This document shows, piece after piece, positions 6,277 to 59,392 of a stretch of 64,000 bases of DNA (positions are counted from its first letter, which is position 1; every line of letters starts with the position of its first letter). A program made the position numbers and the translations under genes. Below the pieces are notes generated by a model, which was not told where the DNA came from, ran no database searches, and saw only the letters and a program-made list of their open reading frames with translations. Origin of the DNA: Diplonema japonicum (lineage: Eukaryota > Protista > Euglenozoa: Diplonemea); NCBI GenBank assembly GCA_964019335.1, contig OZ025758.1, positions 62,001 to 126,000 of the forward strand. Direction: 5' to 3'.

Positions 6277-7523
6277 CTACAGCGCCTTGAGGCCCTCGGG
6301 GATGTTGAGGGTCTTGGGCTTCTCCCAGGTGAACCCCTTCTCGGAGGTCCTACCGAAGTGGCCCATGGAGGAGGTCTCGGAGTAGATGGGCCTCCTGAGG
6401 TCGAGGTCCTTGATGATGTCGTAGGGCCTGAGGCGGTAGTTGTTGTTGATGATCTTGAGGAGGTCCTCGTCGGAGTACTTCCCGGTGCCGTAGCTGTCCA
6501 CGTAGACGGAGAGGGGCTCCGCAACACCGATAGCATAGGCAAGCTGCACAATGCACCTCTTGGCAAGACCGCCGGCAACGATCGACTTGGCGATCCACCT
6601 GGCAGCGTAGCACGCAGACCTGTCCACCTTGGTGGGGTCCTTCCCGGAGAAGGCACCACCACCGTGCGCACCCCACCCACCGTAGGTGTCCACGATGATC
6701 TTCCTCCCGGTCAGACCAGCGTCACCCTGCGGCCCACCGATCACGAACCTGCCAGAGGGGTTCAAGTGGTAGATGGTCTGTTAATTTTTTTTTTTTATGT
6801 TTTAAGGGGGAAAAAAAAAAGAAATTTATTGTGTACCTTTTCGTCGAGGTATTTTGCGGGGATGACCTCCTTGCAGAGGGCCTTGAGGTCCTCCCTGATC
6901 TTCTCGTTGGTGACCTCCTCGCAGTGCTGGGAGGAGATGAGGATGCAGTGCACGCGGAGGGGGGTCAGGAGCTTTGCGGCGCCCTTCTCCTCGACCCTGT
7001 ACTCGACGGTGACCTGGGTCTTGGCGTCCGGGCGGGCCCATGCAAGGGTGCCGTTGTTACGCTTCTCGGAGTGCTTCTGGGCAAGCTGGCGAGCAAGCTC
7101 GTAGGAGAGGGGCATCAGTGTCTCGGTCTCGTCGGTGGCGTACCCGAACATGAGGCCCTGGTCACCGGCACCGAGGTCGCCCTCGTGCTCGTACTGGGTG
7201 CACTGGCCGATGTCGGGGGACTGCTGCTCGATGGCGACGAGCACGTTGCAGGTCTTGTAGTCGAAGCCCTTCGCGGAGTCGTCGTAGCCGATCTTCTTGA
7301 CCGTGTCGCGGAGCACTGTCTGGTAGTCCACCACGGCCTTCGTCGTGATCTCACCGAACACCATCACCATCCCTGTCTTGCAGCAGGACTCGCACGCCAC
7401 CTTCGACATGGGGTCCACAGCAAGGCACGCGTCCAGCACAGCGTCGGAGAACTGATCGCACATCTTGTCAGGGTGACCCTCTGTCACGTGCTCAGACGAA
7501 AACATGAAAGTACGGGTGGACAT
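6277..7523 (-). CDS. MAT: S-adenosylmethionine synthetase (canonical MAT, not MATX); exons 7523-6837 and 6777-6277; 395 aa
   Basis: Motifs [39 protein letters not shown] and [16 protein letters not shown]. The two ORF-track fragments join via a GT-AG intron to give YLDEK|[11 protein letters not shown]. Confidence 0.97.
6778..6836 (-). other. Spliceosomal intron of MAT (59 nt, phase 0)
   Basis: AAG|GTACAC...AAAATTAACAG|ACC. Removal restores the reading frame and conserved sequence. Confidence 0.92.
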
Positions 7524-9604: not shown

Positions 9605-12600
9605 TCAATTGACATTGGCAGCATTGCCATCAGCATCCCTAAGCATGGTGCGGTTGCCGTCGTCCATCTCGAAGTCGTCGAACTGCTTGTTCTTGGAATC
9701 CAGCTCCTCGAGGTCCTTCTTCTCCTTCTGGCTCTTTATGAGGGCGAAGATGAGGAAGGCGATGAGCGCCACCACCACGATCCAGAGAACCAACACAAGG
9801 GCAGCAGGGAGGCAGGCCTCCCCGAGCTTCAATCCCTCGCAGCACTCCTCCCCGTTGCCGGAGGAGGCGCGCTCCGTGATGATCCCAGTGTCCTCGTCAG
9901 CCTCTGCTGTGACCTTGATGGTGTTCTTCCTGTTCCCGTCCCTGTCGTGCGTCTCGAGGGGTTTGAACTCTGCGCCGTCGAACCAGCAAACGGTGTACTC
10001 CTGCTGCGAGAGGGAAGCCTCGAAGTTGGCGGTGACGTCGACAAGCAGCTCCATCTGCGCAACGGGCTCCACAAGGGAGATGTTGTGCTGCACCGCCACA
10101 GCGCACGGTGTCTTGGCCTCCCCGATCGTCGAGAGCTTCCCGCTGTCAGTCCTCGTGCACTGCGGGGCGGCCGTCTGCTTGCAGTCCTCCGCGGGGTCGC
10201 CGGTGGTCGCGTTCACCACACGAACCGTGCGGTCCGTCTCGCTGCTCGCGTTGAAGCACCCGTGGATGATCAGGGAGAAGGTCTGCCCCTTCATCGGCTG
10301 GTTCGGGTACGCCGTGTACCAGTACGGGGCACCGCCGCTGCAGGCCCTCAGGCTGCAGTCCGCGCCCGTCCACCCGCCGTCGCAGACGCACTGGTTCTCC
10401 TCCCCGCAGCTCCCGTGGCCGGAGCAGGTTCCCTCCCTGCTGCAGAGCGTGCAGGTCTCCCTGTCGGACGACTCGTCGAACCCGCACTCGTTGCACTCCT
10501 GTCCGCTCCACCCTGGTATGCACTTGCAGCAGTCCGTGTTGCTCTCCCCGCACTTCCCGTGGTTCGGGTTCACGATGCACGCCCCGTTCTCCTGGCCCGG
10601 TGCCGCCTCCTTTTCGTTCGGCTCGACCCACTTGCACTTGTTCAGGTTGGACCCCGTCCTTGTTGCTTCTCCCGTGCACGCCTCCTTGTCCGTGCGCACG
10701 ATGCAGGCCTCGGGGTTCTTCGACACGCACACCATCTTGTCCTTGTCCTTGTCCCCCTCCGCCGCTGCCACCCACTCGCACCCACCGATCCGCTTGTCCG
10801 CGTCGCAGCTGGTCCCCTCCTTGTGCACGGCGCACCCGAGCTTCACGCACTTGTTCTTCTTCCTGTCCTCCTCCCAACCGCATCCCTCCTGCTGCAAGCA
10901 GTCTCCCTCGGTGGTCTTCGCAGGGCACTCCTCCGCGCACACGGGTTCTCCGCCGGTCCCCATGTCGTCGCCGGTGAACCAGTCGCATCTCTCCGAGGCC
11001 GCCGCGCCGAAGCACGACGCCGAGCTTCCGCTGTAGCGGGCGCACCCGGTCGCGGGCACGCACTCCAGCGTCGCCTTCTTCCACATGCACGGAACCCCGG
11101 CTTGGTTGGCGCCGCGCTCGCAGCTCACCTCTCCCTGGAAGCGAGGGCAGCCCGTCTTCTCCGTGCAGGTCTGCTCCTTCCACTGGCACAGGGCGTCGTT
11201 CTTGCAGTTCGCCTCCGCCGTCCCCGCCTCCGCGTTGTACGAGGCGCACCCTTCCACGTCCACGCACTTCCCGTCCGTGACGTTCCACATGCAGGCCCCG
11301 GCCTCGGGGGCCTCGCACCCCTCCTTCTGCGTGTAGTACGCGCAGTTCTTCTCCACGCACACCGCGTTCGACTTGTCCCACACGCACTCCCTGTCCACCG
11401 TGCACGGGGCCTCCGTGCTGTGCACCAGGCACCCGGACCTGTCCTCGCACTGCGAGGTGGCCGTGTTCCACGCGCACTCCTCGTCGGCGTTGCACTCGGG
11501 GAGCGACGTGTGCACCACGCACCCGTGCCTCTCCTGGCACTGCTCGTCGTTCGCGTCCCACTTGCAGTTCCCGTCCAGGGCGCAGGTCTCCTTCGTCTCC
11601 TTCGCGGGGCACCCCACCTGGGGCTTGCACTCCTCCACCCCGGTCACCCCGGTCACCCAACGGCACCCCTCCGCCGTGTTGCACACCGTCTTCGCCGGGT
11701 ACGCGCACACCTTCCTCGCGCACGACGCCCCGTCCCAGCCGCACATGTTCCCGGTGTCCGCCTCGCACGCCGCCTCGCTGCAGTGCCGCAGGCACGGCGT
11801 CGCCTCGCACGCCGACGCCACCCGGCTCCAGGCACACGCGCTGTCCGCCTCGCACCCGCTCGCCGCCATCCACTCCCCGCAGCTGCTCTTGTGCACGGGC
11901 TCCCCGTGCTTCGACAGGAAGTAGCCGAAGGTGCTGTTCTCGTTGCACAGGTTCTCAAACACCTCCTCCAGCTCCGCCATCGTCGTGTCCAGGGTGTGCC
12001 CCGCAGACGGGTTCGTCGCGAACGCCTCCATCTTCCCCCGCTGCGCCTCGTCCTCCGCGCTCGACACGCTGTACTGCCTCACGTGCACCGAGAACACCTG
12101 CACGCGCTGCTGCTCCAGGTGCCCCGACACCGTCACCATGGACGGCGCCTCCGCGTCGGGGATTTCCCCGTCCGCCACCACCACCAGCACGCGCTTCCTG
12201 TCCGTCGGCGAGCTCTCGAACATCTTCGACGCCATCTCCATCGCCTGCGTCAGGAACGAAGCGTCCGTCGCGTGCGAGGTGAACTGCCCCTCGTGCCAGT
12301 GCACGTCGGCGTCCACCTCGGAGAGCACCCCCGACAGCCTCCCCCCTGTCCCGGTCCCCTTCGGGGCCTTCATCGCCTCCCCTTGCGCCGAGAACTGCAC
12401 CACTCCCACCCGGAAGCCCGCCGCCAAAACCGGGTCGCTCGCAACCCCCGCAGCCTCCCCGGTCAGCGGCAGCCTCTTCGACATGTCCAGCAGCATCTCC
12501 GTCACCGCGAAGAACCCGTGCGGGTGCCTCCCGAACCGCTCCCCCATGCTCAAAGACCCGTCCACCGCCACCACCAGGTCCACAGCGGGGCAGTTCGCGT

Positions 12601-13974
12601 ACAGCGACGCGGCGCACCTCCCCGTCTTCCCGTTCCACAGGCACCCCTGCATCTGCCCGCACGCGCAGGCCTCCGTCTCCTTCCCGCAGAGGGTCACCCC
12701 TTCGTCGCACTTCGAGGTCTTCTTGTCCCACGCGCAACCGTCCGTGTTCTTCTTCGCCTCGCACTCCGCCTCCGCCTTCGGGACCCTGCACTCCTTCACA
12801 CCGCAGTGCGCGGGAGAGTGCGCCGTCTTCCACTGGCAGTCTCCACTCTCGTCCGTGTTGCAGTCCTTCTCGTTCGTGTGCGCCACGCACTCGTTCACCA
12901 CCTTGCACGCCCCTCCCTCCCACATGCAGTCGAACGAGTGCTTCTCGCAGTCCGCCTGCGCCTTGTACGGCACGCACGGCTTCTCCACGCACTGCTCGAT
13001 CGCCGCGTCCCACTTGCAGTCCGGCTTCATCCCGCACGGGGTCTCCGTCTTGTCGTTGCACACCTTCACCTTGCACACGGCTGTCACGTCGTCCCACTCG
13101 CAGCCGTGCGGGTCCGCCACGCACCCATCCTCGGAGGTCGCGGTGACGCAGGGGTAGACGATGCACGACGGTGTTGCTGTTCCTGTCGCCTCCCAGTAAC
13201 ACTCCGCAGCCTTGCACTCGTTCTCGGTCGTGTGAGCACACTCCACGGTCCTCCCGCAGCTCCCGTCCTTCCACGCGCAGGCCTTCCCTTGCTCGTCCTC
13301 GCTCGACACGCAGATGTCCATGTTGCAGTGCTTGTGGCACGTGCTCCACTCGCACGACACCTGCTCGTCGTTCCACCTGCACAGCCCGTCCTTCCAGCAG
13401 ACTGCAGCCTCCCGGAACGACCCGCACGGCACGTGTCCGGCACCGGTGTTCAGGGAGTCCCCTTGGTAGGCCAGGATGATCTTCCCGAACTTGCTGTTCG
13501 GGTTGCAGAAGTCCTTCAGCACAGACCCCGAGAAGTCGTCCAGCGGGATGTTCATGTAGTGGTCCTCCCTCGGCTCCGACACGATGGTCGACAGCACCTG
13601 CTCCGCGTCGATGTCCGTCTGCGTGTGCGTCGAGAACCTCCTCAGCACCACCCCGAAGGTCTGCACCCCCTGCCCGTCCAACACCGCGCGCGCGCTCCCC
13701 AGCTGCGACGCGTCGTGGATCTTCCCGTCCGTCAGGATCAGCAGGATCTTGGCGCGCCCCGGCGCCGCGGCCGACTGGAACATCAGCCCGACGTACTGCA
13801 GGGCCTCCGAGATGTAGGTCTGTTCCATCGCGTAGTTGTCCTCGTGCCAGTCCAGATCCGTTCCGAGCTCAGTGAGGGAGCCCGAGAAACGGCCCCCGGT
13901 CCCTGTCCCGGGAGGGGTCTTCAGGGCGCTGTTCGGGGCGGAGAACTGCACCAGCCCGATCCTCACCCCGGTCG

Positions 13975-14010
<36 letters not shown>

Positions 14011-17000
14011 TCCCCGCCTCTTCCTTCGTCAAAGGAAGGGTCTTGAACCAGTCCCGGAGAGACTCCACCATCGCGTAGAACCCGTGCGGGTGACGCCCGA
14101 AGGACTGGCTCATCGAGCCGCTCCCGTCGAACACGACCGCCACGTCCATCGAGGGGCAGCCCCCGAAGTCCTCCGACTTGCACACGGCGTTCTTCGAGTC
14201 CCACGAGCACACGTCCCTCGCGTTGCAAGCGCACTGGTCCGCCAGGTCCGAGCACACCACCTCCTTGCACACGGCCTCGTCCCCCTTCCACGCGCACTTC
14301 TTGTTGTTCTCGCAGAGAGCCTCCGTCTTCAGCTTCCGGCAGTACTTCTCGCTGCAGATCGTCGGCGACTCCTTCACGTCCCAGTGGCACGCCTCGTCGT
14401 GGTCGCACGTCTTCTCGTCCAGGTGGTGCACGCAAGGCTTCACCTTGCAGCTGTTCGACTCCCACGTGCAGCGCCTGCTGTCCTCCAAGCACTCGCTCGG
14501 GCTCGTCGTGGTGCACGGCTGCTCCACGCACTGCGCCCACGGCTGCGTCCCCGAGATCGCCTCGTCCCACGTGCACGCCCCGTCCAACGTGCACGCCTCC
14601 TTGCTCTCGTAGGTGCACGGGCGCTTGTAGCAGTGGTCCGACTTGCTGCTCCACACGCACCCCGTGGGGTCGCTCAGGCACCCGGACTCCGCCTCGTGCT
14701 GGCACTCCTTCTCCGCGCAGGTCGACTCCGCCGCCTTCCACTCGCACCCGGGGTCCGTCGGGCAGACCGCCATCTCGTGGTCGCAGATGCGCTGCTTGTA
14801 GCAGATCCCCTGCGCCTCGTCCCACTCGCACAGGTTCGACGCGTCCGCGGCGCACACCTCCTTCTCGCAGTGTCGCACGCACGCCGAGTCGGAGCACACC
14901 AAAAGGCTCGCGCTCCACCTGCACGCAGCGTCCTTGTTGCAGCCGTTCCTCTCGAAGTACATCGGACACGGCTGCTTCGGCTTCAACGCCCCCGCCCCGC
15001 CTCCCTCCGCCGAGGAGATGAGCTTCCCGAACTGCTGCGACGGGTCGCACAGGGTCGCCAGGATCGTCTTCAGGTCCTCCATCTGCGCGTCCAGGAAGTG
15101 CTCGGCGCGGACGTCGCTCAGCACGTCCAGCATCGCGGAACGTCCCTGCCCCGCCGTCGCCGGGAACGCCGCCGCCGGGCGCAGGAGCACCCCGAACACC
15201 TTCACCCCGGCCCCGAACAGCGCGCTCACCGCCGTGTTCACCTCCGCCCGCCCCGCGTCCATTAGCACGCTGTCCGACACCACAAGCAGCACCTTCTTCC
15301 GGTCGGGCCTCGTGAACATGTCCTGCGCCAGCTCCAGGGCGTCCGCCACGTACGCGTCCTTCGTGTCGATCATCTTCGCCTCCTGGTAGTCCAGATCCGC
15401 CCCCAGCTCAGACAGCACCCCGGTCAGGTGCCCGCCGCTCCCCACCGCGGGGCCCGTCTTCGTTGCCCGCCCCTTCGCCGCGAACTGCACCACCCCGACC
15501 CGCACCCCGTTCTCGATCCTCTTCGTCGGCGACACCTTCCCGGAGTCCCCGCTCAGCGGCAGCGTCTTCGCCCAGTCCCTCAAGAACTCCAGCACCGCCT
15601 GGTAGCCGCTGGCGTGCCTCCCGAACGCCTGCTTCATCGAGCTCGTCCCGTCCACCAGCACCACCACGTCCATCAGGGGGCACCCCCCGAAGGACCCGGA
15701 CACGCACGCCCCGCTCGAACCGAACCCGGTGTCCCAGAAGCATCCCGCGTCCTTGTTGCACGGGCACGGCGTCTGGATCTTCGAGCAGTCCTTGTCCGCG
15801 CACTTCTGCGCTGCCTCGTCCCAGCTGCACCTCAGCTGCGGGTCCGTCTCGCACGTCCCCTCCGACTCGTACCTCAGGCACACCTTCACGTCGCACTTTG
15901 CGGGCGCGGTGCTCACGTCCCAGTGGCACTCGTAGTCGTGGTCGCAGGTCTGCTCGTCGTCGTGCTCCCTGCACTTCTTGAACACGCACTCCTGCGCCTT
16001 CCACTCGCACGCGTCGTCCGACGTGCACGACGCAGGGTCCGTCGAGCTCGTGCACCTCTGCTTCTTGCAGTGGTCCTTGGACCACACGCAGGAGGAAGCG
16101 GCCGCCGCGGCGTTGCAGGTCTGCTCCGTTGTGTGCGTGCACTCCTTCTTCGTGCACACCTTCGTCTTCGAGCTCCACTCGCAAACGTTCGCATCCGTGA
16201 TGCAGCTGTCCTCCGTGTGGTGGTTCACACACGGCTTCTCCGTGCAGCGGTAGAAACCGATGTCCACCATCGTCCACGCGCAGCCTCCGTTCTCCGTCAC
16301 CGCCTCGCACGCCGCCTCCGTCTTCTGCGACGGGCACGTCGTCGTCGGCTTCTTGAAGCACGACGACGTCGCCCACTCGCACGCCACGTCCGCCGCACAC
16401 GCCGTTTCGTCGCACCCGTACGTCCTGCAAGGGTGCACCGTGCACCGCAGCAGAGCCTCCGACCACACGCACCCCGCGTCGGCCCGGCAGTCTCCCGCTC
16501 CGGCGTAGCTCAGGCAAGGCATCATCTTTTCCGCCGCCGCTTGCTGTTGCTCGAGGGTCATCGCGTTCTTCTTCAGCATCGCAGCCCCGAACACCTTCGT
16601 TTGGTCACACATCGCGTTCAACACCCTCCCCACGAGGTCGTCGATCTCCAAATCCAAGAAGTGCTCGGCGTGCGTCACCGACACGAGCGTCTTCATCTGG
16701 TCGGCCGCCGCGTTGTCCTGCGGCGTCCGCGTGCTCAAGCGGCGGAGGCTCACCCCGAACACCTGCACCGTCGGGTCCAGCTTCTCCATCGCCACCTTCA
16801 GCTTGTCCTCGTCCGAGACCTTTCCGCTCGTCACCAGCAGCACCGCCTGCGCCCTCGTCGTCGGGCTCTGGCTGGAGAAGATCGTGTGGATGTGCTCCAT
16901 CGTCCTCTCCGTGAAGCGGCCTCCGTTTCCTCCTCCGATCATGTTGACAGAGTGGAAGGCGAGGTCCCCGAGGAGCTGGTTCACGTCGCCGGACAGCAAC

Positions 17001-20000
17001 CCGGCCGCCGACGGGGTCGACGGCGTCGTCGGGCTCGTCACCAGCATCGGCTGCACGTCGGTCCCCATCTGCACGAAGGCCACCCTCGTCCCCTCCGCCT
17101 TCGCCGCCGCCTTCGGCACGATGTACGAGTCCCCGTTCAACGGGAGGTCCCGCACCCAGTCCTTCAGCATCTCCATCAGCGCCTCGAACCCGTTCGGGTG
17201 TCTCCCGAACCCCCACCCCATCGGCATCGTCCCGTCGAACGCCACCACCATGTCCACCGGAGGGCAGGCTCCGAAGGCCGCCTCCACGCACGCCGACCTC
17301 GTCTCCACCCAGAAGCACGACGGCTCCGCCGCGCACTCGCAAGGCTTCCCGTCGTGTCGCATGCACGTCGACGGCACGCAGATGTTGCTCCCCTGCTCGT
17401 CGAAGGCGCACGCCGCGTCCGAAACACAGTCTCCCTTCGTCGTCCACCTCGAGCAGTAGGTCTCCTTGCAGAAGGCGGGCGACGCCGTCACGTCCCACTC
17501 GCACCCCGCCTCCGCGATGCACGACCCTTCCTCCAGGTGCCCCACGCACCTCTTCTTCTCACACTTCGCGTTGGTGTTCCACACGCACTTCGCGTCCTCC
17601 TCGCACGGCTTCGCCGAGGCGTGCGTGCACGCCTTCACCCCGCACACCGACGCCGTCTGGTCCCACTCGCACCGGTCCCCATCCGCCGTGCAGTCCACCG
17701 CCTCCGCGTGCACGCACTCCTTCTTCTCGCACTTCACCCCGTTCACCCACTCGCACCCCGCGAGGTCCGACACGCACGCGGGCTCCGTGTGGTGCTGGCA
17801 CGGCGACGGCTCGCACCTGTCGTTCATCCAGTCGCACTCGTAGTCTTGCAGGCACTTTTGCTGGTCCGCGTGCGCGCACACCTTCTCCTTCGAGCACGTC
17901 GCGTCCCCGCTCACGTTGAAGCGGCACCTGTACGCCGGGTCCGACAGGTCCTCGCACAGCTCCTTCGAGCAGTACTGCAGGCACGGTGACACGGTGCACG
18001 CCACCAGCCCCTCGTCCCACGCGCAGCCCGAGTCGCGGTTGCACTCCGCCGACCCCTTGTGGAAGGAGCACGGGAGGTGCGAGTCCGTCGTCTTCAGCTC
18101 CACCAGCCAGCTTCCCCAGGCGGTGCTCGGGTTGCACCACTTGTCGAACACCTTCTCCTTCAGGTCGTCGATCGCGATGTTTGCGAAGTGTGCCGCCGTC
18201 GGCTCCGTCACGATCGGCTTCAGCGACGCCTCCGCCTCGTTGTCCACCACCGCGTGCGAGTCGCTGCGTCGCACGACGATCCCGACCAGGTGCGCCCCCG
18301 CCGACTGGATCTTCGCCAGCGGGTCCGCGAGCCTGTTCTCGTCCATCACCGGGCTCCCCGACAGCACGAGCACGATCTTCTTCCTCCCGTCCGCGGGGTA
18401 CAGGGGCCCCGACAACAGACCAGCCGCCATGTCGAGGGCGCTCGCCAGGAAGGTGTCCTTCGCCATGTGGAAGTGCTCCTGGAACGACAGGTCCTGCCTC
18501 AGCTCGGGGACGTAGCCGGAGAGCCTCCCCTTCGCCCCGTCGGGGGACACCAGCGCCGACCCCGGGACCTTCCCGCTCGCGTCCACGAGCCTCTCGTCCC
18601 CGCCAAACTGCACCACCGCGACACGCGCCGACCCGCGCGCGTACTGCGTCGGGTCCTTCCCGGCCGCCCCGACGTCGCCGGGGAGCGGCAGCAGGTACAC
18701 CCAGTCCTTCAGCATCTCGATCAGGGCGAAGTAGCCGTTCGGGTGCCTCCCGAAGGGCTGCGTCATCACGCCGCTCCCGTCCAGCAAGACCACGATGTCC
18801 ATCGTCGGGCACGCCCCGTAGTGCACGTCCACGCACGTCCCGTCGTGCCAGAAGCAACCGGGGTCCGTCGTGCACGCGCAGTGCTCGTGCACGTCCTCGC
18901 ACCGCTTCGTCCCGCAGGTCCCGAAGTCCCAGGTGCACGCCGGCTCCAAGTCGCACGTCGTCTCGTTGTACTTCGCGCAGTACTTCTCCTTGCACATTCC
19001 GGGCGAGGTCGTCGGGTCCCACTCGCACTGGCTCTCCGTCGCCGACGAGCAAGACAGCTCGTCCACGTAGCCCACGCACGGCTTCTCCACGCACGCCCCC
19101 GTGTCCTTCTCGAAGTCGCACCACACCTTGTTCTCCGCCGCCTCGCAACAGGTCTGGTTTCCGGCCGGGCACGACACGCACCTCCTCGGCTTGCACACCG
19201 CGCCGATCCGGTTCGCGTCCGACGTGTCCCAGGTGCAGGTCTCCGCGAGGTCCTTGCACCCCACCTCCGTCCTCTGCGTCTTGCACGGCTCGAGGGTGCA
19301 CACCCCGACCACCGAGTCCCACACGCAGCTCGTGGGGTCCAACAGGCACGGCTCCTCGTCGCCGTGCTTGCACGGCTTCTCCACACACGTGTTGTTCCCG
19401 TTGTCCCACATGCACTCCGCGTCCCTCGCGCACGCGGGCGCCGTGTCGTGGCTGCACGGCGTCTCCTTCTCGCACCCCTGCGTCCCCGCGTTGTAGACGC
19501 AGTGGTTGTCCACGTCCGCCGTGCACTCCGCCTCCTCGCAGTGGTCGTAGCAAGGGGTCGCCCCGCAGCTCAGCGTCGTGTCCGACCACACGCAGCCCCC
19601 GTTTCGGTTGCAAACGAGCTTCTCGTCCAGCTGCACGCACGGCACGGGTCCGTCCCCGGTCCCCGCGGACCCGCCGTTCGTCGCCGACACGAACCTGCCC
19701 CACCTGCTGCTCGGGTCGCAGAGCCCCGTCAACACCTCCGTCGGGATCTCGTCCATCGTGAGGCTCATGAAGTGATCGTCCGCCAGCTCCGAGACCACGG
19801 GCTTCAAGGCCGCCTCCGCCGCGTCGTCCTCGGCGCTGTGGGCCTTGAACCTCCTCACAGCGATACCGAAGGTGAGGACCTGCAGCTGCTGCAGCTTCGC
19901 CCTCACCGTGGTGAGGCGGTCCCCGTCCATCAGCACCCCGTCCGTGATGATGATCACGATCCTGCGGCGCCCGTCCAAAGGCGAGTCGTTCGTCAGCATG

Positions 20001-41000: not shown

Positions 41001-44000
41001 CTCAGGATCTCGATCAACCCGTAGAAGCCGTGCGGGTGGTTCCCGAACCAGGCGTCCATCGACCCGGACCCGTCCAGCAGCATCACCACGTCCATCGTGG
41101 GGCACCCCCCGAACTTCTGGTCCGTGCACTTGTTGTGCTGCGCGTCCCAGTAGCAGTCCGGGTGCGCCCTGCACGGGCACTTTGCCAGCTTGCTGCAGTC
41201 CTCCTCCACGCACAGCAGCTTTCCTGAGTCCCACATGCACTTGCTGTCCGCGTCGCACTGCGTCTTCGTCCCCTGCGACGGGTAGGTCCTCGGGCAGTAC
41301 TTCTCCGTGCACACGGGCGGGAAGGTCGTCACAGACCAGTGGCACGCGTCGTTGTGGTCGCAGCACTTTTCCGTCGGGTACTTCGCGCACAGCCCCAGCT
41401 CGCATGTCAAAGAGCTCGTCCACACGCACCACGAGTCCGCCACGCACCCGGCCTGCGTCTGGTGTCCCGGCTGCGAGCAGCGCTTCGGCACGCACTTCTG
41501 GTCCGACGGGTCCGCGCACACCTCGTCCCACTCGCAGTTCGCGTCCGCCGCGCACGGCGCCTTCGACGGGTAGAAGCACGGCGTCTTCACGCACATCGCC
41601 GTCGGTCGGATCGACGCGTCCCACGTGCACTGCGGGCCCAGGTTGTTGCAGGTCATCCTGTCCGTCGCCTGGCACGGCCCGTCGTAGCACGGCGGGTTCT
41701 TCGACGGGTCCCACGTGCAGCCGCTGTTCCTGCAGTCCGGCGCGTTCGTGTTGTCCGTGCACGCGCTCTTCTCGCACTGCAGGGTCCCGCTGTTGAACTT
41801 GCACTTGTTTGTCGTGTCCGCCACGCAGTCCGTCTCGCTGCAGTGTCGGAAGCACGGGTGGTCCGTGCACGCCGCTGCCAGCCCGCTCCACTCGCAGGTT
41901 TTCCTTGCCTCGCAGTCTGCCGTTCTTTGGATCGTGTTGCAAGCAGGGGAGTGTACCGCCGAGCCGCTACCGCCACCGCCACCTCCGTTGGTTGAGGACC
42001 CGCTCGTGATGAGAGCCCCGAACACACTGTTCGGGTTGCAGAAGTCGTCCAGCACCTGGTGCGCCTCGTCGATCTGCATCATCAGGGCGTGGCTGTCCTC
42101 GGGGGGGGTCACGATCTCCTTCAGAATCTCCAAATTCTGCTGGTCCTTGTTGGTGGGGTTCCCCCTCGACAGCACGATCCCGAAGGTCTGCACCCCCTCG
42201 GCCCGGAGGACCGCTCCTGCAGGGCCCAGAGACCCCTTGTCCTGGATGCGGCCGTCCGTGAAGATCAACAGGATCTTCTTCCTGTAGGAGGGAGACTCCT
42301 TGAAGACCTCCCCCGCAAACTCTTCGGCCTCCTTCACCAGGGTCTGCGACCTGCGGCCCACGCTCTCGTGCCAGTCGATGTCCGCGTGGAGCTGTCCCCT
42401 GTCTCCCGTGAGCTTCCCGCAGTTGTCGGCGGGGCGGTTCATCCCCTGGCGGTTCATCACGCTGTTCGTGGGGATCCCGTCCCCGGTCGTCCCGGGGGCC
42501 GGGACGCACGCGCACGACGGGCACTCCGCGAGACGCACCCCCTTGTCCCACTGGTTGAAGGCGACACGCACCTTTCCGTTCCTGTCCGTGGAGGGGACCC
42601 CGGCTCTCTCGCCCGTCAGGGGCAGCGCCGTCACCCAGTCCCTCAGGGCCTCCATCAACCCGTCGAACCCGTTCGGGTGCGTTCCGAATCGCTTCTTCAT
42701 CGACGACGATCCGTCGAAGGCCACCACCACGTCCAGGTCCGGGCACTGCGTGAAGGTCTGGTCCCTGCACACGGGGTTGCTCGGGTTCGACCTGTCAACC
42801 ACGCACCTCGGGTCCGCCTGGCAGTCACACATCCTGTTCGGCCCCATCGCAGGGTTGTTGTAGGTGTCGCAGAGCTTGTTGACGCACTTGTTGTTCGCCG
42901 TGTCCCAGGTGCACTGGCCCTTCGGGTCCGCGTTGCAGCTTCCGGAATCCTTGAAGGTCTTGAAGCAGTACTTCTCCTTGCACCCGGCGCACCCTGTCGG
43001 GTCCCAGTGGCAGTCCGTGTCCCGGTCGCACGTCGGCTCCGTCGCGTGCTTGTAGCACTTCGACTCCGCACAGCTCGACCCGCTCCACACGCACGCCTCG
43101 TCCGAGATGCACGCGTTCTCCGTGAAGGCTGTTGTGCAGCGCGTCTTCTGGCAGGCTCCGCTCCCCGCGTCCCACGAGCAGCCTGCGGGGCTCCCCTGGC
43201 ACGCTCCCTGCGAGGTCTCGCCGCACACCTTCTTCACGCACTTGTCGGCGTCGCAGTCCCAGTCGCACGACCCGCTCACGTGGTTCAGGCAGTCCAGCTT
43301 GTCGTAGATCGTCCCGCAGTCCGGGGTCTTGTCCTTGCAGGTCTGCGACGCAGGGTCCCACTGGCAGCTCTTGTCCGCGTTGCACGTCCCCTGGCTGAAG
43401 TGCAAGCACGTCTTCGGCACGCACGTCGCCGGCACCTTAGACGTGTCCCACATGCACATCGAGTCCGGGTCGCTCTCGCACCTGTTCTTGTCCGGGTACT
43501 GGCACACCTTCCTCTGGCACCGGTCCACGTCCCAGAAACAGTCGTTCGCGGTGTCCTGCTCGCAGGGTCCCTGGGAGCAGTGCTCCTCGCACTTCGTCGC
43601 CCCGCAGTAGCCGCTCCCCACCGGGTTGTTCGTCCCGAAGGAGCAGCTCACCGCACCCCCGGACAACAGGCAGTTCGAGCAGCTCATCCCGGCCGCCCTC
43701 TGCGCCGACGGGAGCTCCAAACAGTTCAGGTTCCTGCAACCGTTGTTCCCGGGGCAGGACGAAGGGGCGGGGGTCTTCCAGTCGCAAGCCTGGTCCGACC
43801 TGCACTCCAGCTTCACCCCCCACTTGGAGCACGGAACTGCTCCCGACTGCGCGGGAGGGTTCGTCGTTGTGCTCCCACCACCACCACCGTTGTTCTGGAT
43901 CTGAACCTGTTGAGCGATGGCAGCCCCGAACCTCCCAGCAGGGTTGCAGAAGTCGTTGAAAACCTCGTCAAGCATGTCGTCCAGCGGCACGTTCACGAAG

Positions 44001-47000
44001 TGGTCGTCGTGGTCGTCCGAGGTGATCGGCTTCAGGGTCTCCTCCGCCTCGATGTCGGCCTGGGTGTGCTGCCTTCCCTTTCGCACCACCACACCGAAGG
44101 TCACAACCCCTTCCGCGTCCAGCTTCCTTCGGATGGGCGGAATCTCGGTGCTCTTCTGCGGCTCCAAGGGGTTCATCTGCCCGTCCGTGATGATGACGAG
44201 GACGTGCGCGCGGTGCGAGGGAGACCCGTGGAAGATGTCGACCGCGTCCTCCAAAGCTGCCGCCATGTAGGTGAGGGAGCTCATGTGGTTCGTCTCGTGC
44301 CAGTCCAGGTCGTTCTCCAACTCGGACAGGTCGCCCGTGAGCTGGCCGTTGGAGCAGGTGCGGCCCCCCGAGAGGCGCGGCATCGGGCACTGCTTCCGGT
44401 ACTTTCGCCCGTCGCATCCGTCGGCCCCGTTCCTGCACACCCAGTACTCGTTCTCGATGGAGAACTGCACGAAGGCCAGACGGAAGGTTCCCCCCGTCAC
44501 CTTCGAGTTCACCCCGACCGTGTTGTCCTCCCCGGTCAGGGGAAGCGTTCGCATCCAGTCCCGCAGCATCTCCAGCATCCCGTAGTAGCCGTTCGGGTGC
44601 GACCCGAAGCGCGCGTTCATCGACCCGCTCCCGTCCAGCACGAACGCGACGTCGAGGTCTGGGCAGCTCGAGGTCTGCACGTCCTTGCACTTCGGTGCGG
44701 GCGGCGTCACAGACGGGTCCCAGTAGCACTTCTTGTCGGCCGCGCAGTCGCAGTTGTTCGTGTGGTCGGAGCAGCGCGCCGGGTAGCAGTACGGTCCCTT
44801 GTTGTCGCTCCCCGGTCGGCACTCCGGGTCGCTCGTGCAGGCCCCCTGGTCGATCGTCCCCATCGTCGTCGGGTTCGGTCCCAGCCCGGGGTACTTCGTG
44901 TTGTGCTTCGTGGTGCACACGGTCGGTTGGCACGAGGCCGGCGTCGTCCCGGAGCTCCAGTGGCACCTCGGGTCGTGGTCGCACTTCACCTCGTCGTCCC
45001 CGTACTGCGGGCAGTAGTCGGGGACGCACTCGTTCTTCGTCGCGTCCCAGTGGCACAGCCCCGTCTGCCTCCCGCAGTCCGGCTGGTTCAGAGGCTGGCA
45101 GCGGTCCTGCGAGCAGACGCTGCTCGCGGCGTTCCACGAGCAGCTGTCGCAAGCCTTGCAGTCTGCCTGCGTCCTCGCCACCGTGCACTTCTTCTCCACG
45201 CACATCACCCCCGTCCACTCACAGTCGCTGCTCACCGCGCAGCTCCCTGGGGTCGGGTACGGGCACCGCGTGTCCCTGCACACCGAGTTCTCGCAGTCCC
45301 AGGCGCAGTTCGGGTCGCTCTTGCACGCCGCCGCGTCCGTCGTCGCCGTGCACGTCGCGACCGGCTTGCACACCGGCGGGTCCACCGCCGTGTCCCACTG
45401 GCAGTCTGCGTTCGGCGCCTTCAAACACTTCTCCCGCACGAAGATCGCTCCGCAGGGCTTCGGGTCGCACTTGGTCCCGTCCCACTTGCACAGGAGGTCC
45501 GGGTCGTTCACGCAGGCCTGCTGGTCCGTGTACTCGCACACCTTCCTCACGCACACGTTGTCCGGGGTCTTCCAGTTGCACGTGGGGTCTGCATCGCAGC
45601 AGCTCTTGTCGCAGCACTTCGCGCAGTGGGTCTCCGAGCAGGTCCCTCGGATCGCCGACTTCACCGACGACCCGCAGATGATGGTCGCGCGCTGGAGCTT
45701 GCACTTCTCACAGTCGTACATCCCCTTGTACTGCTGCGGGATCCCCTGGCAGTTCAGCTTCGGGCAGCCGGTCCCCGACGAGCAGCTCGACAGACGCGGG
45801 GTCTGCCACTCGCACACAGGGTCGGCGTTGCACTCGTCCTTGAAACCCCAGGTCGCGCACTGGAAGTGCGTCGCGGTCACCGGAGACACCAGCACCTTTC
45901 CGAACTTCGAGGTCGGGTCGCAGAAGGGTTCCAACACCTCCCCCGGGATCTCGTCCAGCATCAGGTTCATGAAGTGGTCGTCACGCGGCGTGCTCACCAG
46001 CGGCTTCAGCTTCGCCTCCGCGTTGTCGTCCTGGAAGGTGTGGTAGCTGAACCTCCTCATGATGATCCCGAAGACCACAACGTCCTCGTCCCGAAGCTTC
46101 TGCTGCGCGTCGTCCAGAATCCTCGGGTAGCTGGGCTTCCAGCGCGAGTCGCACCCCCTCGGGCACTGCCCGCAGGACGTCCCGGCGCTGCAGGCGTCGC
46201 CGTCGTAGTCCGTCAAACCCCCGTCCGCGATGATGATCACCACGTGCTTCCTGTGCGGCGGGCTCTGCGAGGGGAGGAAGGTGTGGTCCGCCACGTCCAT
46301 GAGGGCGTCGTGGATGTAGGTCCACTGCGACTGGTAGTTCGCCTCGTGCCAGTCGATGTCTCCCATCAGCTCGTTGATGTCTCCGGAAAGGAGACCGTCC
46401 GTGCACTGCCCGACCGCGCAGTTCGTGGGGTGGTCCTCGCTCGGCTTCGCCTCCGCCTTCGAGAACTGGATGAAGGTGAGACGGAAGCCGCCTCCCTTCG
46501 CGCTCGAGCTCGCCCCGACCGTGTGGTCCTCCCCGGTCAGGGGAAGCGTCCTCACCCAGTCCCTCAGGGTCTCCATCAGCCCGTAGAAGCCGTGCGGGTG
46601 GTTCCCGAAGGACCTCGACATCGACCCGGACCCGTCCAGCACGAAGGCCACGTCCAGATCCGGGCAGGTCGAGAAGGTCGTCTTCGAGCAGTGGCCGTTC
46701 GCCCCCGTCTTGTCCACCACCCACGTGCAGGCAGGGTCCTGCACGCAGTCGCACTTCTTCCCGCTGTGCTTGTCGCACCCGGTCAGCACGCACACGTCCG
46801 GCTGCTGCCACGCGCACTTCGTGTTCCCCGCGCACGAACCCTGCGAGGTCAGCGCCCCGCACTCCGTCGGCAGGCAGATCGACGGGCTCGACGTCACGTC
46901 CCAGTGGCACGCCCTGTCTTGGTCGCACCGCAGCTCTCCCAAATGCTTCTGGCACCGGCCCTCCTCGCACTTCGACAGCGGGTCGTTCCACACGCAGAAC

Positions 47001-49033
47001 GGGTCGTTCTCGCACTGCTGCATCGTCACGTGCTGGCACTTCTCCTGCGTGCAGTAGTCGACGAGTGTTGAAGGAGGCCCCGCCGGAGCCGGCGTCGTCA
47101 GCGGCACCCACTTGCACCCGGACTCCTGCAAGCACGTCCCCTCCTTCGTGTGCAGGCAAGCCTTCGGGTTGCACGCGGGCGCCCGCATCACGTCGAACTC
47201 GCACACGTTCAGGAAGCAGTAGTCCGGGTTCCCGGCGGGAGGGCTGCACGGCGCGGGCATCTCCACCGCCACCGCCACGCACGCCTGCTCGTTCGTGTGC
47301 GTCCTGCAAGGGTTCTCCACGCAGGTCGACGGGGTCGCCCACATCACGTTCCACAAACACTTCGAGTCGCTCCTGCAGGACGACGCGTCCGTGTGGCCCG
47401 CGCACCCGGCAGGCTCCCTCCTGCAGTCCGACCCGTCCCACGCGCAACCGGCGCGGGCCAAACACGTCGTCTGCGTGCACAGCACGTAGCACTCCGACAC
47501 CTGACACAGCGGCGTCTTCGAGGTGTCCCAGAAGCAGGCGCTGTCCGCCATGCACGACCCCTCGTCGCCGTTCCCGGAGCACAGGGGCTTGCTCGACGGG
47601 TCGAGGCACCGTCCGGACTCCCACGCGCACTTCGGCGAGGCGGCGAGGCACCTGCACTTCTCCGTCACGTCGCTGCACACAAGCGTCTGGCACTTCTTGT
47701 CCCCGGCGATCTGGGAGTTCCAGTGGCACGGTCCGCCCGTCGTCCTGTCGGCGTTGCAGTCCTGCTCCTCCACGTGCGTCACCGCGCAGTAGTTGTCCAC
47801 GCACTCCGCGGGGCGCTTCCTCGTGTCCCAGTCGCATCCCAGGTCCGCCTCGCAGGTCGGCTCCGTCGGGTACGAGTGGCACCCCCAGTCCACGCACACC
47901 CCGTCCTTCTGAGAGATGTCCCACTTGCACGAGCCGATCGGGAGCTGCGCCTCGCACGCCCCCTGGTTCGTCGCCCCGCCGCACCCGGAGGTCAAGACCT
48001 GCGACCCGTACACGTCGTCCTTGTTCACGCACAGGTCGCCGACACCCCCCCACTCGCACACGTACCCTTCGATGTTCGTGTGGGCGTTCGGGTAGTCGTT
48101 CCACTCGCCGTTCCCGTAGTAGTGTCCGTAGTCCTCACCGGTCGTGTCGCACGTCCCGGGGCAGGTCTTCGAGTACTCGTTCGGCTCTCCGGACTCCCAG
48201 TTCGTGAAGGCTCCCGCTGCAGGTTGGAAGCCCGCGCCCTTCCCGGTCCCGATCAGGGTCCCCTGCCCGCAGTCTGGTCCGGAGCACGGCGTCTTCGTCG
48301 CGGGGAGCGGGTACCCCAGGTCGCAGGCCGAACGCTGGGCCCCCGTCGCCGCCACGTTGTAAGGCGGGCACCCCTCGGGACCCGTCAGCCAGCGCCACTC
48401 CCCCTCCTGCGCCAGATCCCCGCTTCCGATCCACCCCTCGCCGTGCAGCTTCGCCGAGGCCACATCCTGCTCGTCCTGCGAAGTGATGGTGATGAGGTAC
48501 CCCACGAGCCCCAGCACATCCTTCGAGGTGTCCGCGCACTCCGCCTGCGCCTCGTCCCAGTGGCAGTTCCCTGCTGTGTTGCAGTTCACGCTGTTCTTCG
48601 GGTAGTACTCGTAGAAGTTTCCGGTGTGTGTGGAGTACATGGCGTGCCCGAAGTTGTAGGTCAAGCGGCGGGAGGTTCCAGCTCCCGACGTCGACTTGAA
48701 GGTCACAGACGAGATCGCCTGCGCGTACTCGTCGATCGTCGCATCCCCTGACATCTGCAGGATCCCCGTTGTCCTGTCGAAGGTGGGGGTGATCCCGAGC
48801 CCCGCACACGCTCCACAGGTCAGCGTGTCCGCCGCAGGGTCGAACCCATCCTCCACGTCCACCACGGACCCGCTGATCTTCGTCCCACAGCTGCACGCAC
48901 CAGACGTGAAGGTGATGTCCGCACACTTCACGTCAGGGAACGGCGTCATGGGCACTCCCTGGTTGTACGCTGCCCCGAAGCACGAGGCTGCTAGCGACAG
49001 CAGCACCGCAGGGCGGTGCAATGCATGCGCCAT
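9605..49033 (-). CDS. Giant (13,142 aa) single-exon type-I membrane protein with Ig-like, C-type lectin, 18 VWA, ~32 cbEGF-like and many Cys/Trp repeat domains; putative adhesin or surface-coat protein
   Basis: Uninterrupted 39,429-nt ORF with strong G/C third-position bias. Signal peptide MAHALHRPAVLLSLAASCFG. 18 repeats of CPxhDhhhhhDG(S/T/G)xx (MIDAS), most with a later hhhTDG-type strand. Tenascin-type EGF CSGHGSC...CVCDGGWTGADCS. TM AALVLVLWIVVVALIAFLIFALI at ~9737-9805, then a 43-aa charged tail. Confidence 0.95.
13974..14009 (-). repeat. Coding microsatellite (GTT)12 encoding a poly-Thr tract in VWA17
   Basis: Visible directly. Protein reads GKTTTTTTTTTTTTTGVRIG. The same tract length occurs in copy 2 at 59356-59391. 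Confidence 0.95.
28735..29505 (-). other. Internal Ig-like plus degenerate C-type lectin cassette of the giant protein
   Basis: Paralog of the N-terminal cassette: GKDTLECAEC...WSASTGSLVL...VSFKTSS...HYYRYY...TWEKAKQAC...GYLLTVTSPEE...GEGWMG...WTWSTGPEAG...YDNW..GQPS...GEWSS...GYACEWGG. Confidence 0.8.
33197..38476 (-). repeat. Tandem array of ~32 calcium-binding-EGF-like repeats (49-62 aa) in the giant protein
   Basis: Consensus x(V/L)DEC...C...(G)QxCxDP...DWxCxCxPP..G.A....A.C, counted 32 times. Resembles the cbEGF consensus DxDEC...CxD/N...(Y/F)xCxC. Confidence 0.8.
48044..48628 (-). other. N-terminal C-type lectin domain with EPN and WND motifs
   Basis: WDEAQAEC...GYLITITSQDEQ...WIGSGDLAQEGEWRWLTGPE...FTNWESGEPNE...GEWNDYP...GYVCEWGG. 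EPN codons at 48179-48187. Confidence 0.88.
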
Positions 49034-49168
49034 CTTCTCACACGAGTTTTTGCTTTTTGTTTGAACTCCCTTATATCCGGGTGTTCAGTAGTAGTAGCTT
49101 TTGTTGTCTCTCGATGGATATATAGTTTTTTGTGTGTATGGGGGGGGGGGGGGGGGGAGAACCTTTGG

Positions 49169-59356: not shown

Positions 59357-59392
<36 letters not shown>

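Follow-up and report, generated by a model that had tools for sequence, protein, structure and literature searches.

The minus strand of the DNA analysed here, a stretch of 64,000 nucleotides (the window) from the marine diplonemid flagellate Diplonema japonicum, carries a giant gene that belongs to a set of about ten paralogues. It is probably functional and probably codes for a giant adhesin or surface fibril that is anchored in the membrane with type I topology. The integrity of its reading frame, the identities of its domains, and the conservation of its family under purifying selection are established.

The giant gene and its family

The gene comprises 13,142 codons plus a stop codon in one uninterrupted minus-strand open reading frame (39.4 kb; window positions 9605-49033); the intronless frame of the original prediction was thus found again, with no stop codon within it. 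The calculated mass, 1.41 MDa, agrees with the roughly 1.4 MDa given earlier; the protein has a pI of 4.8 and contains 1,141 cysteines. Four genes were read in the window, all of them as uninterrupted open reading frames. The giant gene and the features of a duplicated unit to which it belongs are positioned as follows.

9605-49033, minus strand: whole coding sequence of the giant gene (single open reading frame; paralogues collinear over the full length; dN/dS 0.39)
49633-52011, minus strand: 792-residue ankyrin-repeat gene in the duplicated unit, identical in both units
52600-53661, minus strand: 353-residue AA10 LPMO gene in the duplicated unit, identical in both (Pfam LPMO_10, E = 1e-43)
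54987-64000, minus strand: second tandem copy of the giant gene, its 3' 9 kb, identical; it continues past the window, its ATG lying at window-equivalent position 94415

The genome contains about ten frames of ~13,000 residues that belong to this family. On other contigs lie paralogues with 77% and 59% identity to the window copy; they are collinear with it across all ~13,000 residues and possess the same number and order of modules. The dN/dS against the paralogues is 0.39 overall, and 0.30-0.64 when calculated segment by segment along the gene. The family is under purifying selection. The original prediction had missed both the existence of this multigene family and the fact that the window copy has an identical tandem partner: a 44.4-kb unit consisting of the giant gene, the ankyrin gene, and the AA10 LPMO gene is repeated once in tandem with zero substitutions, and the two units differ only by two homopolymer lengths.

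So close an identity could reflect duplication by the assembler, and some paralogues are broken (C11, into 4,578 and 8,524 residues; C64, 6,565 residues), as might be expected if the repeat array had been inflated during assembly or the gene were an untranscribed relic. We nevertheless consider an artefact or a dead gene extremely unlikely. An assembly expansion of the module array, a possibility raised in the original prediction, is contradicted by the presence of the same array in independent, diverged, and collinear paralogues on other contigs and by internal DNA repeats that are only 73-80% alike; these observations, together with the dN/dS values, refute the artefact or relic reading as regards the gene itself. 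Moreover, the 5' 4.5 kb of the gene recur exactly in contigs from four runs that belong to three studies; the depth of these runs is even and looks like that of DNA. Because the 39-kb frame is free of stop codons and dN/dS is below 1 along its whole length, the gene is not a relic.

With about ten diverged members in the genome and a dN/dS that is elevated for so large a protein, the family would also fit a molecule for self/non-self or gamete recognition whose specificity stems from paralogue diversity. We regard this as very improbable: divergence among the paralogues is spread evenly along the protein and is not focused on a hypervariable head, and sex is undocumented in diplonemids.

All named relatives of the giant protein are diplonemid. 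Public databases hold fragments and shorter members from at least nine diplonemid species; those of Diplonema papillatum include KAJ9442392.1, named 'Halomucin', as well as several hypothetical proteins with DIPPA_ identifiers. Trinity transcriptomes of Rhynchopus, Namystynia, Artemidia, Hemistasia, Sulcionema, and Diplonema contain homologues that measure up to 6,951 residues and correspond collinearly to large portions of the giant protein; the homologues are hence transcribed in other diplonemids. The notion that such a combination and scale had not been described in a protist stands insofar as our literature search found no paper on the family, but members of it were already present in the public diplonemid databases.

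Domain architecture from signal peptide to cytoplasmic tail

Every element of the architecture proposed earlier was recovered, with qualifications that concern the thresholds for the EGF-like repeats of the rod and the domain previously termed 'Ig-like'. From the N- to the C-terminus, the features are the following.

48971-49033, minus strand: signal peptide, residues 1-21, MAHALHRPAVLLSLAASCFGA (direct reading)
48584-48970, minus strand: N-terminal beta-rich domain, copy 1, residues 22-150, the former 'Ig-like' domain (AF2 pLDDT > 90)
48029-48583, minus strand: CTLD1, residues 151-335, with EPN at 283-285, WND at 311-313, and a loop insertion of ~50 residues (Pfam, AF2, fold search)
46670-48016, minus strand: first block of Cys/Trp four-cysteine repeats, residues 340-788 (direct reading, repeat count)
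38804-46669, minus strand: VWA supermodules 1-5, starting at residues 789, 1456, 2096, 2643, and 3183, each a VWA domain followed by Cys/Trp repeats
33197-38500, minus strand: rod of 32 cbEGF-like repeats, residues 3512-5279, of a 49-residue six-Cys and a 57-residue eight-Cys type
32654-33031, minus strand: beta-rich N-domain, copy 2, residues ~5335-5460, without a lectin domain (direct reading; equivalent matches in paralogues)
29990-32233, minus strand: VWA domains 6 and 7 plus linker, residues 5601-6348 (Pfam, in-house HMM)
28664-29521, minus strand: beta-rich N-domain, copy 3, plus CTLD2, residues 6505-6790, sugar-site motifs degenerate (QPS, WSS)
11915-28279, minus strand: VWA supermodules 8-18, residues 6919-12373, with a period of 508-532 residues
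10604-11914, minus strand: C-terminal block of Cys/Trp repeats, residues 12374-12810 (direct reading, repeat count)
10343-10591, minus strand: membrane-proximal EGF domains of the teneurin/tenascin type, residues ~12815-12897 (Pfam, PDB profile)
9854-10342, minus strand: beta-rich domain, residues ~12898-13060, conserved in nine paralogues
9737-9850, minus strand: juxtamembrane CCEGLKLGEAC and TM helix (residues 13075-13099), invariant alignment columns
9608-9736, minus strand: 43-residue cytoplasmic tail with the invariant motif K-x-F-[DN]-D-F-E-M-[DE]-D-G (paralogue alignment)

The predicted signal peptide is evident by direct reading, and its n/h/c pattern recurs in the paralogues C63 and C14. 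The domain that follows it is confidently modeled as beta-rich, but no fold was assigned to it; similar modules are repeated in bacterial giants of the RTX/cadherin type. Both C-type lectin domains were re-found; the EPN/WND sugar motif (Ca site 2) is present in CTLD1 only, where it is kept in most paralogues. Pfam Lectin_C (PF00059) matches 15 of the 16 family copies (best E = 7.8e-12); the window copy itself reaches 21.1 bits, below the cut-off of 22.6. The AF2 model of the domain (pLDDT 90.7) matches the corresponding domains of collectins, ASGPR, and CEL-I with Z-scores of up to 13.1 (13.1 to CL-K1; 12.4 to tetranectin, SP-D, and ASGPR; 24-28% identity), and Foldseek yields TM values of 0.64-0.75.

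The predicted number of 18 VWA domains was confirmed with an in-house HMM, which places them in groups of 5, 2, and 11; Pfam VWA (PF00092) scores 104.7-207.3 bits per piece of ~3,300 residues, with a cut-off of 23.8. The AF2 model (pLDDT 89) reaches VIA Z-scores of 19-21 (rmsd 2.4-2.8 over 180-190 residues) and a Foldseek probability of 1.0. Its fold matches, at Z ~20 overall, include TRAP, integrin I domains, collagen VI, and the vWFA domain of LapA, and the mussel byssus protein PTMP1 is also among them. A complete MIDAS motif (DxSxS...T...D) is present in 13 of the 18 domains; it is degenerate in those starting at residues 7451, 8487, 10074, 10589, and 11117. Because of these five degenerate motifs, and since CTLD2 lacks the sugar-site motifs, some of the array may have a purely structural role.

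The claim of 32 cbEGF-like repeats holds for the count, which is exactly 32, and for the cysteine pattern, but not by Pfam thresholds. The repeats run as triplets of ~160 residues; they share the motifs DxDEC and C3-x-D and have an aromatic residue two places ahead of C4; in the six-Cys pattern, C5, C12, C19, D21, C32, C34, and C49 are invariant, and D3, E4, and W30 nearly so. All rod repeats remain below the gathering scores: EGF_CA (PF07645) matches 8 and EGF 13 of the 32, with best E-values of 5.4e-4 and 7.1e-4, and the first repeat attains 20 bits against a cut-off of 27. A PDB profile search with these repeats gave no match. The Cys/Trp four-cysteine repeats were likewise re-found, at ~127 per protein, and AF2 models each as a short helix plus a beta hairpin.

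Close to the membrane, the C-terminal EGF region proposed earlier scores above the Pfam thresholds (EGF_Teneurin, 24.8 bits; EGF_2, 22.6 bits), and its PDB profile matches are mastigoneme proteins, reelin, and teneurin EGFs. For the adjoining beta-rich domain, we obtained no credible PDB sequence match (a single weak one, E 0.57) and no usable Atlas match. The TM helix and the 43-residue tail are both present by direct reading, as predicted, and the TM and tail motif (KKFDDFEMEDG) are invariant in nine paralogues, down to 39% identity.

The Cys/Trp repeat and the VSG C-terminal domain

A pattern C-x8-C-x5-C-x-W-x6-C is common to the Cys/Trp repeat and the C-terminal domain (CTD) of the variant surface glycoprotein (VSG) of Trypanosoma brucei, both organisms being Euglenozoa. 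When a profile built from 150 Cys/Trp repeats was compared with the PDB, 10 of the 12 sequences matched were VSG CTDs (best E = 9.1e-4, which is marginal), and both CTD subdomains of MITat1.13 were hit; the only other domain-level matches were the PSI domains of Semaphorin-4D and plexin-B1. Conversely, the PSI profile matches 11 of 49 single Cys/Trp repeats with E-values down to 0.0026, although the repeats stay under the PSI (PF01437) gathering score (best 16.8 bits vs 23.1). A search of the D. japonicum genome with Pfam PF10659 produced no candidates, and the control was likewise without match. Reports of the VSG CTD are confined to the T. brucei group (PMC8591177), and the domain occurs in one or two copies beside a GPI anchor, as opposed to the ~127 repeats of the giant protein. 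Given these limits and the marginal E-values, we consider direct descent and, on the other side, convergence or a common PSI-like ancestry to be equally likely, and we treat the resemblance as a lead, not as proof. The Cys/Trp module might conceivably be an ancestral euglenozoan homologue of the VSG CTD, the latter having been recruited from the stalk of a giant adhesin, but on the sequence evidence at hand we consider this rather doubtful. If true, the membrane-proximal domain of the antigenic coat of trypanosomes would derive from ancient giant adhesins that free-living diplonemids still carry.

Adhesin, coat, or matrix

As an adhesin or surface fibril, the protein lends itself to a simple mechanistic model. 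Its signal peptide would send ~13,050 residues outside the cell, where ~160 small disulfide-locked modules (~127 Cys/Trp and 35 EGF-like) would build a long semi-rigid stalk, with an estimated length of ~0.4-0.5 micrometre if extended. The 18 VWA domains, of which 13 have an intact metal-binding MIDAS site, would be spaced along this stalk every ~530 residues, and a Ca-dependent C-type lectin of the mannose/GlcNAc type would be situated at its distal tip. Such an array with a distal lectin should permit multivalent, Mg/Ca-dependent binding to proteins and glycans presented by substrate, detritus, or prey. The invariant TM helix, the juxtamembrane Cys motif, and the KKFDDFEMEDG motif would couple the molecule to a conserved partner inside the cell, which could be a sorting adaptor or the cytoskeleton. 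From this architecture we infer where the protein is located (the surface), what it binds, that its adhesion depends on cations, and that its tail has a partner. The earlier view of a membrane-anchored, divalent-cation-dependent adhesion filament is supported in part; it fits all that was tested, namely the type I topology with its invariant TM helix and tail motif, the MIDAS-complete VWA domains, and the EPN/WND CTLD. Its alternative of extrusome cargo is disfavored because the membrane anchor and the cytoplasmic motif are conserved.

The same domains could mainly cross-link neighboring molecules into a mesh, so that the protein would serve as a protective or structural surface coat of glycocalyx fibrils, a barrier or decoy against viruses, grazers, and enzymes. 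The many paralogues and their moderately fast evolution (dN/dS ~0.4), the very disulfide-rich stalk, the automatically assigned name 'Halomucin' of the D. papillatum homologue, the degenerate binding motifs in five VWA domains and CTLD2, and the likeness of the Cys/Trp module to the membrane-proximal domain of the VSG coat in trypanosomes are all in keeping with this. However, 13 MIDAS-complete VWA domains and a canonical EPN/WND distal lectin have been conserved, as expected for ligand capture, and the protein has only 48 N-glycosylation sequons (sequence count) and, by direct reading, no Ser/Thr/Pro-rich mucin tracts; a coat is consequently unlikely. We rate lower still, as quite improbable, a shed or secreted extracellular matrix or mucilage protein whose proteolytically released ectodomain would provide sessile stages with an adhesive matrix or sheath. 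Such stages occur in some diplonemids, the VWA, EGF, and CTLD set is that of animal matrix proteins (collagen VI, matrilins), and PTMP1 of mussel byssus is a fold match; yet no cleavage site was identified, and conservation within the C-terminus is highest in the TM helix and the cytoplasmic motif, an argument for a function that requires the anchor.

Among the closest known parallels of the anchored adhesin that we favor are the gliding adhesins TRAP, MIC2, and CTRP of apicomplexans. These too are type I proteins of protists, in which MIDAS-bearing VWA domains precede small disulfide-rich repeats, a TM helix, and a tail that is short and acidic. With Z 20.0 and 17.5, the VWA structures of TRAP and MIC2 rank among the best matches by fold, and CTRP also has several VWA domains. 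However, the giant protein is ~10x larger, has 18 VWA domains vs 1-6, and stems from an unrelated lineage (Euglenozoa); none of the Pfam scans detected thrombospondin type 1 repeats (TSP_1), and the acidic tail (FDDFEMDD) lacks the subterminal Trp of TRAP and MIC2.

Collagen VI (VWA, Z 19-20), matrilins, AMACO/VWA2, SVEP1, and fibrillin-type rods share the vocabulary of VWA arrays, cbEGF rods, and CTLDs, and presumably the logic of cation-stabilised rods that carry adhesion heads. In contrast to these animal proteins, the giant protein is membrane-anchored rather than secreted, its EGF-like repeats have diverged too far to reach the Pfam thresholds, it possesses no collagen or coiled-coil oligomerisation region, and its dominant Cys/Trp stalk module is absent from them.

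A functional analogy may be drawn to LapA, MpIBP, and the Aeromonas Lap protein, giant bacterial adhesins of the RTX/LapA type, which are megadalton cell-anchored fibres with a repetitive extender and distal Ca-dependent vWFA and sugar-binding modules. The vWFA domains of LapA and Aeromonas match at Z 17-18, and the N-terminal beta domain of the giant protein resembles modules of RTX/cadherin-like giants. Unlike RTX/LapA adhesins, it has no T1SS signal, no Big/BIg extender domains, and no Pfam match to RTX nonapeptide repeats (PF00353); it is composed of disulfide-rich modules of the eukaryotic secretory pathway and held by a C-terminal TM anchor.

Finally, tubular mastigoneme proteins of stramenopiles (PDB 9ufe) are the best PDB matches of the membrane-proximal EGFs (E = 3.2e-7). 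Although this likeness is confined to generic EGFs of the teneurin/tenascin type, with no shared architecture or flagellar location evident, the giant protein and the mastigoneme proteins alike are surface-fibre proteins of protists that are rich in Cys and contain EGF domains.

Architecture and domain content of the giant protein

Window positions 9605-49033 on the minus strand hold a single stop-free open reading frame of 13,142 codons, the product of which (the window protein) has a computed mass of 1.41 MDa, a pI of 4.8, and 1,141 Cys and 290 Trp residues, in keeping with the original prediction of an uninterrupted frame encoding a protein of about 1.4 MDa. To our knowledge, the length of this 39.4-kb coding exon is exceptional, and the members of the family rank among the largest eukaryotic proteins predicted. 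The giant-gene stretch has a G+C content of 65-70% (flanks, 40-50%), and the long open reading frames in the other five frames are a by-product of this composition. Reading of the translation and tests of the individual modules recovered the previously proposed architecture module by module.

Layout of the window protein (gene on the minus strand; residue numbers)
aa 1-21, minus strand, signal peptide (read directly from the translation)
aa 22-335 and 6505-6790, units of N-domain (a beta-rich domain formerly called Ig-like) and C-type lectin domain
starts at aa 789, 1456, 2096, 2643, 3183; 5601, 6115; and 6919 through 12147, 18 VWA domains (5 + 2 + 11)
aa 3512-5279, EGF-like rod of exactly 32 repeats
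between the other domains, about 127 Cys/Trp repeats, C-x8-C-x5-C-x-W-x6-C
C-terminal region, membrane-proximal EGF domains (Pfam EGF_Teneurin and EGF_2, both above threshold)
C-terminal region, after these EGF domains, a conserved beta-rich domain
aa 13075-13099, minus strand, TM helix (read directly from the translation)
after the TM helix, minus strand, cytoplasmic tail of 43 aa (read directly from the translation)

All 18 predicted VWA domains were found again, with Pfam VWA scoring 105-207 bits in each 3,300-aa piece of the protein; the metal-binding MIDAS motif (DxSxS...T...D) is complete in 13 of them, and in supermodules 8-18 (a supermodule being a VWA domain with its Cys/Trp linker) they follow one another at a regular spacing of 508-532 aa. 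An alignment of 47 supermodules from three paralogues (A2; 33-59% identity to its first sequence) yielded a structural model with a pLDDT of 89, whose VWA part resembles TRAP, integrin I domains, collagen VI, anthrax-toxin receptors and the vWFA domain of LapA (Z of about 18-21). VWA domains likewise filled the match lists when a 529-residue supermodule was used in fold searches.

The N-domain is present in three copies; after two of these comes a C-type lectin domain (CTLD1 and CTLD2). In Foldseek and VIA-align comparisons, the C-terminal two thirds of the AlphaFold2 model built from 16 N-domain and lectin units of the same genome (alignment A1; mean pLDDT 90.7) group with C-type lectin domains, for example CL-K1 (Z 13.1) and tetranectin, SP-D and ASGPR (Z 12.4), at 24-28% identity. 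Pfam Lectin_C matches 15 of the 16 family copies (best E = 7.8e-12), while the window copy lies just under the cut-off (21.1 versus 22.6 bits). The lectin with EPN and WND motifs foreseen near the N-terminus is CTLD1, which carries both; CTLD2 has QPS and WSS at these positions and has therefore probably lost the canonical sugar site. Searches of a protein atlas returned generic VWA and lectin clusters only, with scores of 0.80 or less, and no match to the C-terminal beta-rich domain.

The predicted number of rod repeats, 32, was exact. They are of two types, 49 aa with six Cys and 57 aa with eight Cys, and retain D-x-D-E-C, C3-x-D and a Trp two residues ahead of C4, the consensus of the cbEGF calcium site. 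Pfam EGF matches only 13 and EGF_CA only 8 of the 32 (best E-values near 6e-4; one repeat scored 20 bits, below the cut-off of 27), and a profile of the repeats found no match among PDB sequences. Because the calcium-site consensus is kept but the Pfam matches are few and weak, "cbEGF-like" is, as judged from these motifs, the right wording.

Each Cys/Trp repeat, a small four-Cys stalk module, is predicted in the A2 model to form a short helix and a beta hairpin. When a profile of 49 repeats was run against all PDB sequences, the three matches were all C-terminal domains (CTDs) of Trypanosoma brucei VSGs. With a profile of 150 repeats (A6), 10 of 12 matches were VSGs, the best being MITat 1.13 (E = 9.1e-4), both CTD subdomains of which align; the only other domain-level matches were PSI domains, those of semaphorin-4D (E = 0.033) and plexin-B1, and single repeats match Pfam PSI weakly. 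In the reverse direction, Pfam PF10659 (VSG-C) found no match in the D. japonicum genome, and the control of this search was likewise unmatched. The CTD occurs in VSGs of T. brucei and T. evansi and is absent from those of T. congolense and T. vivax (PMC8591177), a restriction that makes direct descent less parsimonious. Homology of the Cys/Trp repeat with the VSG CTD, as suggested by these profile matches, appears unlikely to us. As a small disulfide module the repeat is new, and VSG CTDs and PSI domains are the only relatives of known structure that could be detected for it.

Paralogues, gene integrity and relatives in other organisms

Searches of the 62.5-Mb genome (132 contigs; the window is C111:62001-126000) revealed some ten frames, each about 13,000 aa long, that share their N- and C-termini. 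About ten genes, each with an uninterrupted 39-kb frame, amount to 0.4 Mb of coding sequence in the 62.5-Mb assembly.

Family members by contig, with identity to the window protein
C111, two copies, 100%
C63, two copies
C64, C61 and C5, about 80% at the N-terminus
C14, 59%
C99, 56%
C11, C30, C29 and C9, shorter or broken members
C11:765792-804678, C64:146809, C30:357662 and C29:454623-467758, positions of shorter or broken members

The frame of the C11 member is broken into 4,578 and 8,524 aa, and C64 bears a truncated copy of 6,565 aa. At C13:706186-714703 and C35:401251-418197, small genes with the N-domain and lectin unit (590-616 aa and about 1,900 aa) stand in tandem arrays.

Compared over their whole sequences, the paralogues on C63 (13,023 aa, 77% identity) and C14 (13,165 aa, 59% identity) are collinear with the window protein from signal peptide to tail and need hardly any gaps. 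Only the C14 protein departs from this, by an extra supermodule in its N-terminal Cys/Trp block, at aa 474, which gives it 19 VWA domains; module number can therefore change, and rarely does so. The dN/dS ratio (Nei-Gojobori) between the window copy and its C63 paralogue is 0.39 overall and 0.30-0.64 across all 1,500-residue windows, and purifying selection consequently acts over the whole length. Tandem repeats at the DNA level are confined to the EGF rod and are 73-80% alike, too diverged for inflation by the assembler. Together with the collinear paralogues, this divergence rules out an assembly expansion of the module array, a possibility that the original prediction had named as one that would undo it.

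In four public runs belonging to three studies, short contigs match the 5' 4.5 kb of the gene without a difference. Logan contigs covering 5,901 bases have an even depth and most likely derive from DNA (seven runs found, none recorded as RNA). The short-read contigs of all four runs stop at 49156-49162, upstream of the ATG; we rejected an mRNA end as the cause, since a C-homopolymer explains these breaks. Intergenic C/G homopolymers of about 15-20 nt lie at window 49139-49160 and 52250-52270.

A query of 10,000 aa found ten ENA proteins of 5,516-7,575 aa, mostly with 45-54% identity and one with 29%. When the first 1,100 residues were used in an exhaustive HMMER search, 2,042 proteins were returned, with E <= 1e-30 for 119. 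All named relatives are diplonemids.

Named relatives of the window protein
Rhynchopus humris, Trinity transcript, 3,899 aa
R. euleeides, Trinity transcripts, up to 6,951 aa
Namystynia karyoxenos, Trinity transcripts, 4,650 and 4,898 aa
Artemidia motanka, Trinity transcript, 4,201 aa
Hemistasia phaeocysticola, Trinity transcript, 5,040 aa
Sulcionema specki, Diplonema japonicum and D. ambulator, Trinity transcripts
D. papillatum, GenBank KAJ9442392.1 ("Halomucin", 4,686 aa), DIPPA_09731, DIPPA_02028, DIPPA_05526 and others

In tblastn comparisons, the R. humris transcript follows the window protein collinearly over aa 1-4,000, and those of R. euleeides and Namystynia do so over its central and C-terminal 4,600-6,400 residues. 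The long Trinity transcripts thus indicate that very long mRNAs of homologues are made in several genera, Hemistasiidae among them. The D. papillatum proteins reach at best about 50% identity. Curators of gene models should note that public databases annotate the family in fragments or misleadingly ("Halomucin"). A bacterial origin was considered and rejected, the named kin being exclusively diplonemid. A distant relative in ENA (P0010; 7,575 aa, on a 34-kb contig of AT-rich DNA) has the same Cys/Trp repeats, four VWA domains and, in addition, Trefoil and PA14 domains, and the module set may extend to an organism beyond the named diplonemids.

Membrane anchor, proposed function and known systems

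In a C-terminal alignment of nine paralogues, the juxtamembrane CCEGL-LGE-CL motif is invariant, even in the C99 copy with its 39% identity in this alignment. Invariant down to the same copy are the key residues of the TM helix, its Trp among them, and the cytoplasmic motif K-x-F-[DN]-D-F-E-M-[DE]-D-G, whereas the C99 ectodomain has diverged freely. The ENA relatives possess a related tail, DDEKWNKQFEAQVDE. The invariance of anchor and tail motif suggests that the protein acts in its anchored state and would engage a conserved cytoplasmic partner through its tail motif. Because of this conservation, the MIDAS-complete VWA domains at regular spacing and the EPN/WND lectin at the distal tip, the sequence is best read as that of an adhesin or surface fibril, multivalent and Mg/Ca-dependent; at an assumed 2.5 nm or so per small module, it would be roughly 0.4-0.5 micrometre long when extended. 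The rivals to this reading are a protective coat, a shed matrix or a recognition molecule. Of the functions first envisaged (filament, cell-coat hair or extrusome cargo), the anchored filament fits best, and extrusome cargo is disfavoured, as the conserved membrane anchor speaks against it.

The component parts are known domain families. The window protein differs from the TRAP family in lacking a TSR and the tail Trp, and from RTX adhesins in lacking RTX repeats, features by which these families are defined. It is a functional analogue of both, and the earlier comparison with giant bacterial RTX adhesins fits at this functional level; we class it with the giant modular cation-dependent adhesins. 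Our literature search turned up no paper describing the combination, the scale, the Cys/Trp module or the lineage, in agreement with the earlier statement that no such protist protein had been described. VWA, CTLD and cbEGF-like domains, the "animal ECM" toolkit, have been independently assembled in Euglenozoa at megadalton scale. The family, made of cation-dependent adhesion domains and conserved among diplonemid genera, in which it is also transcribed, offers concrete candidates.

The tandem unit and neighbouring genes

Window positions 9600-54015 recur at 54982-99397 with a period of 45,382 bp, and the second unit extends past the window. Between the two 44.4-kb units, each containing the giant gene, a 792-aa ankyrin-repeat gene and a 353-aa AA10 LPMO gene, there are zero substitutions, the only differences being two homopolymer lengths. 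Perfect identity stops 5 nt beyond the stop codon of the giant gene, and the regions downstream of the two units show patchy likeness, at 74-88% in short collinear blocks. The pattern suggests that gene conversion has recently homogenised an old duplication; the alternative is an identical unit created by duplication in the assembly.

Genes neighbouring the giant gene
window 4024-5634, minus strand, acyl-CoA carboxylase carboxyltransferase gene, 536 aa, uninterrupted, full-length Pfam Carboxyl_trans coverage
window 49633-52011, minus strand, ankyrin-repeat gene, 792 aa, nearly all ankyrin repeats, between the LPMO and giant genes
window 52600-53661, minus strand, AA10 LPMO gene, Pfam LPMO_10 (E = 1e-43)

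The AA10 LPMO (353 aa) is of secreted type with a Cys-rich C-terminal extension, and its gene adjoins that of the giant adhesin and is duplicated together with it. Introns are absent from all four genes read in the window. No stretch of the window matches the 19-nt 3' part of the spliced leader, even with up to 3 mismatches. The 3' part of the spliced leader, of the diplonemid/kinetoplastid type (CAGTTTCTGTACTTTATTG), occurs 232 times genome-wide and is spread over most contigs, often near contig ends, and is not confined to tandem SL-RNA arrays.
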